A stretch of 63,402 nt of DNA, counting the filler, from Calcarisporiella thermophila CBS 279.70 (lineage: Eukaryota; Fungi; Calcarisporiellomycota), in NCBI RefSeq assembly GCF_041956535.1. It is 12 parts of 11 records of this genome, joined end to end, with 100 filler letters (N's around TTAATTAATTAA, not from the genome) between each part and the next. Parts side by side here need not be neighbours in the genome. Positions count along the whole stretch, not along the records: positions 18,042 to 23,363 come from NW_027192217.1; positions 23,464 to 27,753 come from NW_027192255.1; 10 more parts are not named here. The stretch is one strand, 5' to 3'. Every line of letters starts with the position of its first letter. The stretch's first letter is position 1. This document shows, in pieces, positions 18,042 to 23,479 of this stretch. Below the pieces are notes generated by a model that made no database searches, had not been told where the DNA came from, and saw nothing but the letters and a program-made list of their open reading frames with translations. Both the position numbers and the translations under genes were made by a program.

Positions 18042-18110
18042 TTTTAAAAGCTTAGGGATAGCTAGAGGATTGTCGGGATAGACCTTATTAGACATATATT
18101 CGACTCAACA
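18042..18110 (-). mobile_element. LTR3 terminus 16 bp upstream of tRNA-Gly
   Basis: Ends ..TCAACA; homologous to 10195-10260. Confidence 0.65.
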
Positions 18111-18126
18111 ATTCAACAAATAGCAA

Positions 18127-18197
18127 GCATGGTTGGTTTAGTGGTATAATTGCCGCCTGCCACGCGGCAGACCCGGGTTCGATTCCCGGACCATGCA
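18127..18197 (+). tRNA. trnG-GCC: tRNA-Gly(GCC)
   Basis: GCATGGT/ACCATGC acceptor, GCCGC-CTGCCAC-GCGGC anticodon arm, GGTTCGATTCC. Confidence 0.95.
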
Positions 18198-19043
18198 TTT
18201 AGTTTTTCTAATTTTTCACAATTATAGAAACTATTTATAAGTAATTTAAATAATACACAATTTCTTGGATTGTGAGAGGGATTAGCTTAAAAGGGATCTG
18301 TGGGGTAGAGGAGTACGATGAGCTTTATACTTATAGTTAAGATATTTTTCTTATTTTTTTATTTTTTTTTCTTAGTATTCACTACTACTATTCAATCTTT
18401 AATTCACTTATTTATTTTTAAATATATACACAAAAAGCACCACATAATTAATATCGTGGTTATTATTTAATAGAGAAGATTTTTCTTTAATTACGCAAAT
18501 TGGTTGCTGACTGGGAGTAGTAATAATATGACCTTCTTATTTGTCGTTATAACAAATAAGTATGTTTTTGACTACTTGAATCTAAATTCCAAAATGCCCT
18601 CTGTATGATTAAAAGCATTTATAATGGAATTATTATGTATACTACAAAGTTAACGCGCGTCTTTCAACAGTTGTACAATTTTTTAACAGATCATTCTCTA
18701 TACGGGTGCGATTGTACATCTACATTCCATCAGAGTGATTAGAATAGTTGTAATAATTTAATGGCATAATAAATGGGAGGTAAAACATAAAATTTTGAAA
18801 TTCTGTAGAATAAAATCGTTGCTCGTATCGAATCGAAATAAAAAATTTGTGGCTTTATCGCAATTTGGTCATTTGATACTAAAAATTATAAAAATCATAT
18901 GCTTAGACTTCCAGAACAGCGGAAATATTGCATTTTTTTATTTCACATCTCATTTTCAAAACATTATTGCTTATCCTCGCTCATTTCTCCACATTATTGA
19001 TCAAAACCATTAAACCCCGCATTCGCACCAACATTTTACAAAC

Positions 19044-20259
19044 ATGGGTAATTTAAATTCCAATCCAACACAAGATAACACTCTTTACGACACTTGGCCC
19101 TCAGTGCTCTCTACCCCACTTCCGCCCCTGCCTTCTCCGGCACGAGAGGATCCCTCCTCCAAAAAAAGTTTCTTTGCTACCGCACAACTTCTCTCTCCAC
19201 CAACTGCAGCAGAAAAAAGTAAATCATTAACGCCAACACCATTGTTCTTGCGCTCGCGGCCAAAAGATATAGATAGTGGAGATGAAGTCGATTCTCCTTC
19301 GTTACTATCTATACACAGTGAATCACCATTAACCCCCAAAATGCCAATTACACCGCCGGGAGTAATGCCTCATGATAATCATATGAATAAAGAGAAAGAC
19401 TTTCACTTAGGCCATACTGAGTATTCGGGAGGAACGGACGAGAAGAAAAATTTCCAAGGGAAATCACAAGAGGTTACCGTACCCACATTGATTCATTGGA
19501 ATGGAGGAGGGAATAACGTATTTGTAACGGGATCTTTTAACGAGTGGCGATATAAAATCCCCCTTGTGAAAAGGTATAGCTATCAATGTTCATCATGGAT
19601 TGACATCTTTGACAGTTACATAAATTTTTGCTTACACGATCATCTCAAATAGTACAACGGATTTTTTAACAGTGCTAGAGCTCCCTCCGGGTACACACCG
19701 CCTCAAATTTGTAGTTGATGACGAATGGCAATGCAACTCTGAGCTTGATGAGGCAACCGACGCGGGAGGACATCTTGTCAACTTTATTCATGTGCCTCTG
19801 CCCGGCGAAGATGGCCACGATTTTGGTTCATTCGACTCGACAATAATATCTCCACTTGAATTACGTGGTTGGGAACGAGAACAAGAAGATGAGGAAGGAT
19901 ATTCTCGAGAAATACCTGCTTATCTATTACCTAGAGGAGAAGGCGGCCCTGAGGCAGAAGAGGGACGACGAAAGGTCTACGGAAAGAAGCCTACTTCATT
20001 ACCCCGTCATTTTGAAAAAGTTATGCTCAACAAGCATACGTTCAAAAATCATAGCAACCGTGATGATGTAGAAGAAGAACGAGTAGATAGCGAAGGAGAA
20101 ACAGAAGAAAGAGATGCAAGCGTGTTACCAGTACCAGCCCATGTAACGCTTAATCATCTGTATACAAGCTCAGTAAGAGACGGGGTCGTAGCTCTGGGGA
20201 TGACGGTGCGGTATCATCGCAAACACATAACGACCATGTATTATAGGCCGTTAAATTGA
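19044..20259 (+). CDS. SNF1/AMPK beta subunit (Sip1/Sip2/Gal83-like), intron 19574-19652
   Basis: N-terminal MGN myristoylation site, CBM48 (WNGGGNNVFVTGSFNEW, GTHRLKFVVDDEW), ASC domain (LPVPAHVTLNHLYTSS..RYHRKHITTMYYRP). Confidence 0.92.
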
Positions 20260-21839
20260 TTTATTTTTATACGCAAAATCAAAATAACTTTTGTACCTCA
20301 TTCTATGTATATTTCGCTCTTTTTTATTTTTTTATTGACAAACGCCTAACTGAATTCACTTGTATTATACGAAATTTTCATGTACCATAATTATTATCTC
20401 TTAATTTTCGCCCTAAATTTTTTTTTATTCTCCATGCGATAATATAAATATAAGTTAACCCATATTAATTGAATTTTGTCTTGTCACTTATACAGGTAAA
20501 AGTACATTCAGTTCACTATTCTGGTTTTGGAGTCCGATAAAATGTGAAGAGGCACTCCAGCTAACGACTCATTAATGATATCCAACCAGCTATCTCCACT
20601 CAAGGGGAAAATAAAATATTCTCTGATTAAATTAAGAAATGAACTAAGACAATTCTTACGGGCTTTTGATGAACCATACAAATATCAGGAGCAGACACTC
20701 AAAATCATTCTCGGAGGTAGTACAAAATGACCAGATGGAGAGAGTGAGGGATGAGTACTTTTACTTATACTTTTATTTCAAATATAATCTCTTATTTTAA
20801 ACTAATCTACTTTTTTTACCAAGAGCAAAGCTTTGAGTGTCACACTTATTATACATCATTTACTTTTTTGCGATGATAACGCGATTGCAGAATATTGCTA
20901 CTGTAATACTATTTTTTATCTATTCTTTTTATATATTTTTTCAAGCTTATATATAAAGTTGTCATGTAATTCGAAAAAAAGGAGCAATATAAATTTTTCG
21001 TACTTTTTGGAGCATTCTAGCGCACCCTCCACTTCCTCTAATATTCCTCATAACCTTTCTGGGGCCTCAGATAGTAAAACAAATAAGCTCATCCATTTTT
21101 TCAACCAAATATAATACTCAACTCCGAGGAAAGTTAACAATCAATCTAGCAGAAAGTCACTTGATTACTACTATTCCCTGGTAAGGCATGTTTAACCTAA
21201 ACTTAAGTGCACCCATTATAAACCAGGTTCCCCATTTTTTGTGAAAATGATGCTTTTGTTGGTTTGATTTGGTACAGGAGCTCATTTGTCGCTAGTAAAT
21301 GAAATCAAGATGCACATTCTGGGCTATCTCTAGCGCCTATTAATTTGAATAAGATCTCCTTCGTCATATCTGTGCTGCATACTGTAAGATGTCGTTCTAG
21401 ATTGGACACGCTCTCGGTCAGGTTGGTTGTCACCTAATCGCTTCAGCAGGATATGCATTTCTGACACAAACAACTCCTCTAGCTTACCCAGCTGTGAATA
21501 TCCGGTTTTCCTCGCCATTCTCCTCACCTTTCGAAGTTCCGTTTTATAATGTTTAAGGAAAGTCGATTGTAATTTCAGACAGTTTTTTTTTAACACGGTT
21601 TCTCACTATGAATCACCATTTCCACATTACAGTTCTGTTGCCATAACAAAATATAATAATTAGATTCAATTATATAACTGGTTTACTAATATGACTAAGG
21701 AATAAATTGTTTTTTATATGGACCTATTGAATAAGCCCTGGGTAGTTAAGGGATAGTGTAGACTACTACACCAAAATCGCCGAGGTTATGCTCCATGCCT
21801 ACCCTGGATATGGAATTATAACTTATGCTAAGTCCTTAG

Positions 21840-22151
21840 TTTATTTTTAACAAAAGATCTCTATTGAAAAGCCTCCTATATATGTTAGGTTAGGACAGAC
21901 TTCTACGTCAAAATCACCCAGGTACTGCCCCTGGCCTCCCATTTTTCTGGCTGGATTTCTCCTAAGGATTTTTGCTACCTATTTTTGTAGCCGCTTGATA
22001 TTACTTGCTTGTTGCTAAACTATTGATAGCGGTTAAGTTTTGAGAAAGACTCGGCAAACTCTCATGGAATGTTGTCGCCTACGGGAATCGAACCCGCAAC
22101 CCTATTGATTCGGCTCCGGGGCCCAAAACCATTACGCTAACCAAGAGCGAC
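21840..22151 (-). mobile_element. tRNA-derived SINE family C, full length
   Basis: Head with A box TAGCGTAATGG and B box GGTTCGATTCC. Tail contains CTTCTACGTCAAAATCACCCAGGTA, shared with LINE-A. Confidence 0.85.
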
Positions 22152-22614
22152 GGGGGGGGGGGGGGGATATTTTTTTGTTACGGGCGAAAGGAGATACGTG
22201 TGGAGGGGGGTCCGGATCCTGATTAAAATGCGAGATTTATCTTACTAATTCAGGGAACTGAAAAGTATCCTCATGAAGTTAATCGTTGAAGGTGAATCAT
22301 AGGTCATATGCCTTTTTGCATATTATAGCAAATTGCTGGCAGAAGTTAGAGAACAATTAATAAACAGTAATAGTAGAGTAATCAAACACGACAAGCAGAG
22401 AAAACCAGACACGACAGGGATGGCAAGCGAGGGACAGTAATGAGAGACAGTAACAATGGAAAGTCCAGGGCGACAAGACAGAGGCAATACTGATGGAAGA
22501 GCCAGACACGACAGAACGGAGAGAGTTATTGTAGTTATTGTATTGAACCAGACTGGAAAAGACAGTTAATACTAATAGAGAACATAGACACGACAAGCGT
22601 ATCGCGCTTCCTGA

Positions 22615-22748
22615 TTTTTTTTTTAAGGATCTTTATTATAAAGTATCCTTTTTTGCTAGTAAAGGAATTTGATAGATATTAAAATGTCAGAAAACCTGCA
22701 ATACATGTAAGAAACGATAGATAGTGTGAACACCTTATTTTTCAAGGA
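22615..22748 (-). mobile_element. Short 3' tail of a family-B non-LTR element
   Basis: T-run plus GGATCTTTATT..AAGTATCC..AATACATGTA, homologous to 53620-53755; flanked by TSDs. Confidence 0.75.
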
Positions 22749-22763
22749 GTATCGTGCTTCCTG

Positions 22764-23036
22764 TTTTTTTTTTTTGGAGATTAAAGGATCTTTTATTGAA
22801 AAGTCTCCTATACAAGTTAACTGCAAGGATTGTACACTCCTTCTACCATTTCTTACATGTATTGCTTTGTTTTCTGATGACTACCAATATCAAATGACTA
22901 ACGAAGTATCTTATTGCCCGGTTCCTAGTGTATGTCCCGAACCCATCTCTAGTACTGGTGCCGTCGCCGGGAATCGAACCCAGCACACACTGGTTAAGCA
23001 CCGGGTCTCTTAACCACTGTGCCATCCAAGGACGGT
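22764..23036 (-). mobile_element. tRNA-derived SINE family D
   Basis: A box TGGCACAGTGG, B box GGTTCGATTCC, polyA, family-B terminal GAGATTAAAGGATCTTTTATTGAAAAG, TSDs. Confidence 0.8.
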
Positions 23037-23057
23037 GTATCGTATTTCCTGAATGAT

Positions 23058-23272
23058 ATTTTTTGGATCAATCAACGGAGACTTTTATTAGTTTCCGTAG
23101 CTTACAAGAGTTTAATGATTAAAATGAAATAAGAAAGGGGGGAATAAAGGGTAAATTAGATGTATATAGTGATCGGGTATTTAGTGAAAGGTATGAAGTA
23201 AAGAGGAGGGGACGAGGGGAGGAGGGAAAGAGCGGACTGGGAGAGAGGAAGGGTTGCTTCGTCACTCCAGTT
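23058..23272 (-). mobile_element. LINE family C 3' fragment with TSD
   Basis: Matches the other LINE-C tails; flanked by TCGTA(T/C)TTCCTGAATGAT. Confidence 0.88.
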
Positions 23273-23479
23273 TCGTACTTCCTGAATGATTACGTGACTG
23301 CCTATTTGACTTCCCGACACTAAGATCCATTATCTTGTAACATATCATGTTGTGAGGAATTGGNNNNNNNNNNNNNNNNNNNNNNNNNNNNNNNNNNNNN
23401 NNNNNNNTTAATTAATTAANNNNNNNNNNNNNNNNNNNNNNNNNNNNNNNNNNNNNNNNNNNNCTATAATATTTTCACC

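Follow-up and report, generated by a model that had tools for sequence, protein, structure and literature searches.

The window, by which we mean the whole 63,402-nucleotide stretch of DNA that was analysed, contains at positions 18042-23363 a short eukaryotic contig with a G+C content of ~37.5% that is transposon-rich from ~21700 to its end. Leftward of the stack of insertions described below, this piece carries the following features.

18127-18197, plus strand: tRNA-Gly(GCC) gene, identified by the tRNA search; the only tRNA gene in the piece
19044-19573 (exon 1) and 19653-20259 (exon 2): AMPK/SNF1 β-subunit gene, with a GT-AG intron of 79 nt at 19574-19652
21330-21596, minus strand: 88-codon ORF, lacking both a Pfam match and an exact record
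21707-21835, minus strand: truncated SINE, a 5′-truncated copy of the second SINE that retains the 3′ part only and adjoins the decayed A-tail of the latter
21836-22153, minus strand: second SINE, a diverged tRNA-derived element of a related family, whose head and tail align with those of SINE-D (see below); it lies just left of the host repeat

Searched separately, both exons of the β-subunit gene matched AMPK1_CBM and exon 2 also matched AMPKBI; the best relatives of known structure are SIP2 and AMPK β. A word search with exon 2, confined to a length window in which full-length relatives do not fall, gave a single hit, at 37% identity. The gene is of an ordinary housekeeping type; its product starts with MG, a candidate myristoylation site. 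The 88-codon ORF could represent a small gene or else an exon located between the AMPK β gene and the transposon zone. An exact-product look-up with three ORFs of the piece returned no record.

The stack is located within a host repeat (22176-23342, no strand assigned) that the first-pass annotation had called an LTR. Read directly, the repeat starts with TGTTAC and ends with GTAACA; these TG...CA termini with their 6-bp inverted repeat fit a putative LTR and are weak evidence taken alone. After subtraction of the inserts and the extra target copies, the repeat measures ~496 bp, made up of 423 bp on the left, a 20-bp target and 53 bp on the right. Its 5-bp flanks differ (TTTTT versus TATCA), so there is no flanking duplication; neither a primer-binding site nor a polypurine tract was found adjoining it (no TGG-type site follows 23342), and no second copy was found elsewhere in the piece. 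A transition-tolerant pattern scan with the uninterrupted target gave nothing in metagenome, prokaryotic-genome and viral collections, and the block most conserved between the B-tail and SINE-D inserts gave nothing in the same three collections. Internally, the host repeat contains ACACGACAAGC-like motifs at 22368-22396 and 22570-22598, as well as tandem units of 13 nt (1.9 copies, 22429-22453) and 9 nt (2.1 copies, 22524-22542). A pure G15 run (22152-22166), followed by ATATTTTTT, separates the host repeat from the 5′ end of the second SINE and lies 9 nt from the start of the repeat; it could be an expanded homopolymer, a polypurine-tract remnant or an assembly problem.

Within the host repeat, copies of a short target alternate with three inserts, as listed here from left to right.

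22599-22614, plus strand: target copy 1, GTATCGCGCTTCCTGA, triplet CGC, 16 nt including the A at 22614
22615-22748, minus strand: B-tail, 134 bp, with T10, ~35 nt of direct SINE-family 3′ tail and ~70-95 nt of inverted SINE body
22749-22763, plus strand: target copy 2, GTATCGTGCTTCCTG, triplet TGC, 15 nt
22764-23036, minus strand: SINE-D, a complete tRNA-derived SINE with tRNA-like head (right end), body, 3′ tail and T12 on the plus strand
23037-23056, plus strand: target copy 3, GTATCGTATTTCCTGAATGA, triplet TAT, 20 nt including AATGA
23057-23272, minus strand: LINE-C, a 216-bp fragment whose short A-rich tail reads TATTTTTT on the plus strand and whose 5′ part is pyrimidine-rich
23273-23289, plus strand: target copy 4, TCGTACTTCCTGAATGA, triplet TAC, 17 nt, running into the right flank TTACGTGAC

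On direct reading, the four copies represent one target consisting of GTATCG, three variable bases and TTCCTG, with an AATGA extension in the later copies. The A at 22614, which closes copy 1, is the base that follows CCTG where the target is uninterrupted (CCTG-A-ATGA). The four copies had been noticed in the first-pass annotation and are borne out here by direct reading, by a repeat search that independently recovers them as families D1 and D10, and by the core TCGNNNTTCCTG, for which the piece contains four exact matches, all on the plus strand and all in the stack; shuffling gives an expectation of 0.04, with at least four matches in 0/100 shuffles. The only variable sites in copies 1-4 are the adjacent positions 7, 8 and 9 of the 15-mer, which read C/T/T/T, G/G/A/A and C/C/T/C, respectively. 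The succession of states described earlier (CGC, TGC and then a TA common to copies 3 and 4) can be read directly, and all three differences are transitions, as had been claimed. Reading copy 4 from 23270, as in family D10, gives GTT for GTA and adds one A/T transversion, which the start chosen for this copy in the first-pass annotation conceals. The chance that three variable positions among 15 are consecutive is 13/455 (~0.03), and their adjacency suggests either that the local context is mutable or that the events depended on one another.

All three inserts lie on the minus strand, the A-tail being visible on direct reading as a T-run right after the left target copy. The elements differ from one another, and every one of them has a tail of its own and is bracketed by its own two target copies, so three independent insertions into one target site are supported.

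The leftmost insert, B-tail, matches SINE-D in two parts. The segment 22615-22649 aligns with 22766-22809 in the same sense (32/35 identical, reached in 1/500 shuffles), and the segment 22667-22736 aligns as the reverse complement with 22895-22825 (55/66 identical, 0/500 shuffles); the two elements share an inverted repeat of 35 nt, 22698-22732 against 22831-22865. In terms of the RNA, using the SINE-D numbering, the direct part corresponds to 22766-22809 and the inverted part carries on at 22825-22895. The inverted segment adjoins the 5′ target copy (copy 2), with its 22825 end toward that copy, which is the geometry of twin priming, and the duplications around the insert (target copies 1 and 2) are intact. 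On these alignments, B-tail is a truncated SINE-family copy carrying a 5′ inversion of the twin-priming type.

The region 22764-23036 combines a head containing A and B boxes with an A-tail and a flanking duplication, and is a tRNA-derived SINE on these grounds. The A box (TGGCACAGTGG, A-box-like, at ~23014-23024) and the B box (GGTTCGATTCC, 22969-22979) are separated by ~45 nt. The head matches the T-arm of tRNA-Gly in the same piece perfectly over 15 nt and can be folded with acceptor, anticodon and T arms (z = -2.4). The A-tail is represented by T12, and copies 2 and 3 form a duplication of 15 nt with 13/15 positions matching. The head is too degenerate for a tRNA call by ARAGORN or Rfam. 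The SINE heads were also considered as tRNA genes and rejected, neither program making a call.

The likeness of LINE-C to the SINE-D tail is limited to the 3′ ~57 nt (42 identical, with 14 gap positions) and is marginal, being reached in 1/500 shuffles for the last 80 nt and in 9/500 for the whole element; alignment with the second SINE (21836-22153) revealed no similarity. The name LINE, as applied earlier to 23057-23272, is unproven: these 216 bp contain no ORF with family evidence and are too short for a reverse-transcriptase or endonuclease coding test, and no LINE coding sequence was found in the piece 18042-23363. The 3′ tail common to B-tail and SINE-D, and marginally to LINE-C, would fit the use of one reverse-transcriptase machinery. 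Stem-loops in only 2/4 of the 3′ tails fold better than shuffled sequences, which is not taken as a sign of a conserved structure.

Left of the host repeat, the truncated SINE shares 91 identical positions with 21841-21977 of the second SINE (0/500 shuffles). Comparison of the flanks recognised no duplication flanking the second SINE and no second re-used target in this pair. Both copies (21707-22153) lie outside any copy of the target motif, so the family does not seem strictly specific for the target sequence, this being a weak test with a diverged subfamily. The flanks of the truncated SINE (21668-21699 and 21814-21832) share AATTATA(TA)ACT and TATG(A)CTAAG, with a 10-nt gap on the left side, and may constitute a long, decayed target duplication. 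The minus orientation common to all five retroposon copies hints at polar targeting.

The arrangement was probably produced by three separate target-primed reverse-transcription (TPRT) events in which poly(A)-type retroposons inserted on the minus strand at one ~20-bp hot spot. The plus strand was the primer strand; its nick followed CCTGA in the case of B-tail, CCTG in that of SINE-D and CCTGAATGA(T) in that of LINE-C, and the second-strand nick lay 15-17 nt leftward, before GTATCG in two cases and before TCG in one. Each event would duplicate the target and leave one further copy. Following an insertion, the left copy would run into the T-run of the inserted element, and an intact first-nick context would be present only at the right copy, where the target is joined to the original right flank AATGATTACG. 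Because only the right copy would retain both sides of the first nick, a site determinant at or right of the nick would cause that copy to be recut, and its re-use would have a mechanical reason without any tRNA gene. The determinant might be a sequence preferred by the endonuclease or a landmark past the contig end. Between the events, C7>T and then G8>A would have arisen and been passed to the later copies, with C9>T last, in copy 3. With respect to the nested re-duplication proposed in the first-pass annotation, serial insertion into one re-duplicated target stands, but the re-use of the right copy on each occasion is something that we infer from this scheme.

For the order of arrival, the sole informative site in an unrooted comparison is position 8 (G,G | A,A), which separates copies 1 and 2 from copies 3 and 4; position 7 (C | T,T,T) counts as a singleton unless a root is supplied. 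Parsimony applied to the target copies of this stack ranks the order given in the first-pass annotation (B-tail, SINE-D, LINE-C) best when the root is CGC, with three steps compared with four for the SINE-D-first orders and 5-6 for LINE-C first. With a free root, however, four of the six orders tie at three steps, those with SINE-D first among them, and the one-step lead obtained with root CGC consists of a CpG transition, the likeliest change to recur. The six orders were also compared by likelihood, using a 64-state model of the three sites with context-dependent CpG transitions and integration over insertion times, which gave the following posteriors.

Root CGC, no CpG excess: full order B-tail, SINE-D, LINE-C, 0.62; SINE-D before LINE-C, 0.88; B-tail before SINE-D, 0.74
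Root CGC, CpG 5×: full order, 0.37; SINE-D before LINE-C, 0.93; B-tail before SINE-D, 0.44
Root CGC, CpG 15×: full order, 0.22; SINE-D before LINE-C, 0.94; B-tail before SINE-D, 0.27
Free root: full order, 0.14-0.16; SINE-D before LINE-C, 0.85-0.89; B-tail before SINE-D, 0.18-0.22

LINE-C first receives a posterior of at most 0.12 under every setting, and SINE-D very probably inserted before LINE-C, a result that is robust across all settings. The later half of the annotated order is in this way upheld (0.85-0.94), but its first step, B-tail before SINE-D, hinges on an assumed ancestral CGC and on CpG not being hypermutable, and is not settled by the substitutions.

In most settings the substitutions fit as well or better with SINE-D having arrived first; B-tail would later have gone into the copy on its left and LINE-C into the one on its right, whichever of these two came earlier. 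Under this reading, copy 2 and copies 3 and 4 would have gained their T at position 7 by two parallel CpG C>T changes, or else the T was already present before insertion. Jointly, the two orders of this kind obtain 0.26, 0.55 and 0.72 with root CGC (no CpG excess, CpG 5× and CpG 15×, respectively) and 0.68-0.76 with a free root. Against them, apart from the extra step with root CGC, they would require the first nick to be made in an altered context, CCTG followed by a T-run, and an extra A at 22614 that by chance equals the original target base. This A is explained with no extra assumption only if B-tail preceded SINE-D, since CCTG then still stood before AATGA, and it favours that relation with a weight of ~3-5 to 1. 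A forward replay of B-tail, SINE-D and LINE-C reproduces all boundaries without an extra assumption, AATGA appearing only from copy 3 on; the other orders also reproduce the boundaries, with the exception of the A at 22614 if SINE-D preceded B-tail. When this junction base is considered together with the substitutions, the full order reaches ~0.45-0.78, and B-tail, SINE-D, LINE-C emerges by a modest preference as the most likely succession, while the arrival of SINE-D first is a tentative alternative. Three serial TPRT events in the order B-tail, SINE-D, LINE-C are accordingly put forward, with confidence slightly above even, as the best explanation of the locus as a whole.

A loosely specific endonuclease would not strike one 6-nt window three times by chance, which argues for real targeting, and the scatter of the first-strand nicks over 5-6 nt is unlike that of precise site-specific endonucleases. 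What steers the elements here may be a preference for the sequence or a landmark on the right; the two predict the same physical order and we weight them about equally. According to the latter, the site would be set by its distance from a Pol III gene or similar landmark just past the right contig end, in the manner of TRE5, so that the sequence of the site itself is not the cue and newcomers land at the same distance, pushing older elements to the left. We consider this possible, if short of an even chance. All five of the retroposon copies at 21707-23272 are on the minus strand (1 in 16 for random orientation), the 5-6 nt spread of the nicks resembles a distance window, and two related SINEs occupy unrelated sequence just left of the host repeat. 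The host repeat ends 21 bp before the contig does, and a tRNA gene at that point would match the 13-33 bp spacing given for DGLT-A (PMC5911963); dictyostelids offer documented cases of elements integrating serially at one tRNA gene (PMC5006619). At its other end, the contig starts 85 bp upstream of tRNA-Gly, possibly because a repeat had inserted in front of this gene and interrupted the assembly; if so, retroelements of this genome sit near tRNA genes. The landmark itself is entirely unseen. Rightward of the nick, 74 bp are visible up to the contig end at 23363, and these contain neither a tRNA gene nor any other Pol III gene; a spacing greater than the 44-54 bp known for TRE5 would therefore be needed, and the sole tRNA gene of the piece (18127-18197) is 4.4 kb leftward of the stack. 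It is very improbable that the stack is an assembly artefact, that short repeats gave rise to it by unequal crossing-over, or that it was put together as a composite at another place. The piece is indeed a short contig ending in repeats, but the intervening elements are mutually different, each having its own tail by the left copy and its own 5′ end by the right copy, and the boundaries of 16, 15 and 17 nt, with AATGA from copy 3 onward only, are those predicted by stepwise duplication. Returning to the serial TPRT events, a LINE/SINE system steered to a short window in the end of the repeat, either by a Pol III landmark or by the sequence of the repeat, is a rather doubtful further proposal. 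If integration were steered to one window, stacks would be in strict age order, and nested target copies would provide, at many loci, a readable record of the order of insertion and of the local mutation spectrum.

The changes in the target copies had also been attributed to methylation-driven decay. In the nested model the only change at a CpG is C7>T; G8>A follows in a TpG and C9>T occurs in a CpT, and the neighbouring CpG (C5G6) is unchanged in 4/4 copies. The observed/expected CpG ratio is the same for the transposon zone and for intergenic DNA (0.77 each), compared with 0.84-1.03 for exons, and so gives no sign of transposon-specific CpG decay. A RIP-like or CpG-decay signature of the transposon zone was rejected, the indices being the same there as elsewhere in the piece. 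All of the changes being transitions, methylation-driven decay is consistent with them, but with only 1/3 of them at a CpG and the ratio equal in both zones it receives no specific support. It also pulls in the opposite direction to the annotated order, the posterior of which falls from 0.62 to 0.22 as the CpG rate is raised from 1× to 15×.

The stack shows a real insertion hot spot, the copies of which fix only part of the order of arrival. A target that is re-duplicated with each insertion stores, on a small scale, the succession of events at its own locus. Should stacks of this kind be numerous, they would yield relative ages for retroposon families without a family consensus and reveal whether integration has a polarity with respect to a landmark. 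At this locus the record amounts to three adjacent bases and fixes one of two order relations. Shared CpG transitions are poor markers of common descent, and genome-wide use of such records would require the ancestral state and a context-aware model.

The structure is of a known kind, retroposon hot spots, the stacking of elements and twin priming all having been documented. R1, R2, Tx1 and TRAS are sequence-specific non-LTR retrotransposons; as with these, one short site has been used repeatedly here and each insertion regenerates a usable site, but the nicks vary by 5-6 nt and two related SINEs lie at unrelated sequences. Twin priming is reportedly the origin of the 5′ inversions of LINE-1 insertions. 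B-tail resembles these in having a direct 3′ segment with an A-tail together with an inverted segment from the RNA immediately upstream; it differs in being a 134-bp SINE-family/LINE-tail copy in a compact non-mammalian genome and in having a target that is not the T-rich nick site of L1.

In dictyostelids, the elements TRE5, TRE3, NLTR and DGLT-A are targeted to tRNA genes and integrate repeatedly at a single tRNA gene, according to the available text of two reports (PMC5006619, PMC5911963). The pile-up at one position, the fixed orientation and the displacement of older elements by newcomers are similar, as are the duplications of ~15 nt and the scatter of the insertion point by a few nucleotides. 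Unlike the dictyostelid stacks as portrayed in those portions, this one has no Pol III gene visible beside it (74 bp to the right); it also contains tRNA-derived SINEs and a triple re-duplication of one target, neither of which is described for dictyostelids in the accessible text of PMC5006619 and PMC5911963. Independent arrivals of more than one retroposon at one locus are likewise known from the EhLINE/EhSINE hot spots (PMC1635306) and from CanSINE (PMC4084570); in contrast to those cases, insofar as the available passages describe them, there were three arrivals here, with the same bases duplicated in a single haplotype, and the copies record the history. Among fungal tRNA-derived SINEs, AfuSINE2 (PMC5063351) resembles SINE-D by description in its tRNA-like head, which contains A and B boxes, in its A-tail and in being flanked by duplications. 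The duplications are 15-17 bp in length here, compared with 4-14 bp in AfuSINE2 (PMC5063351).
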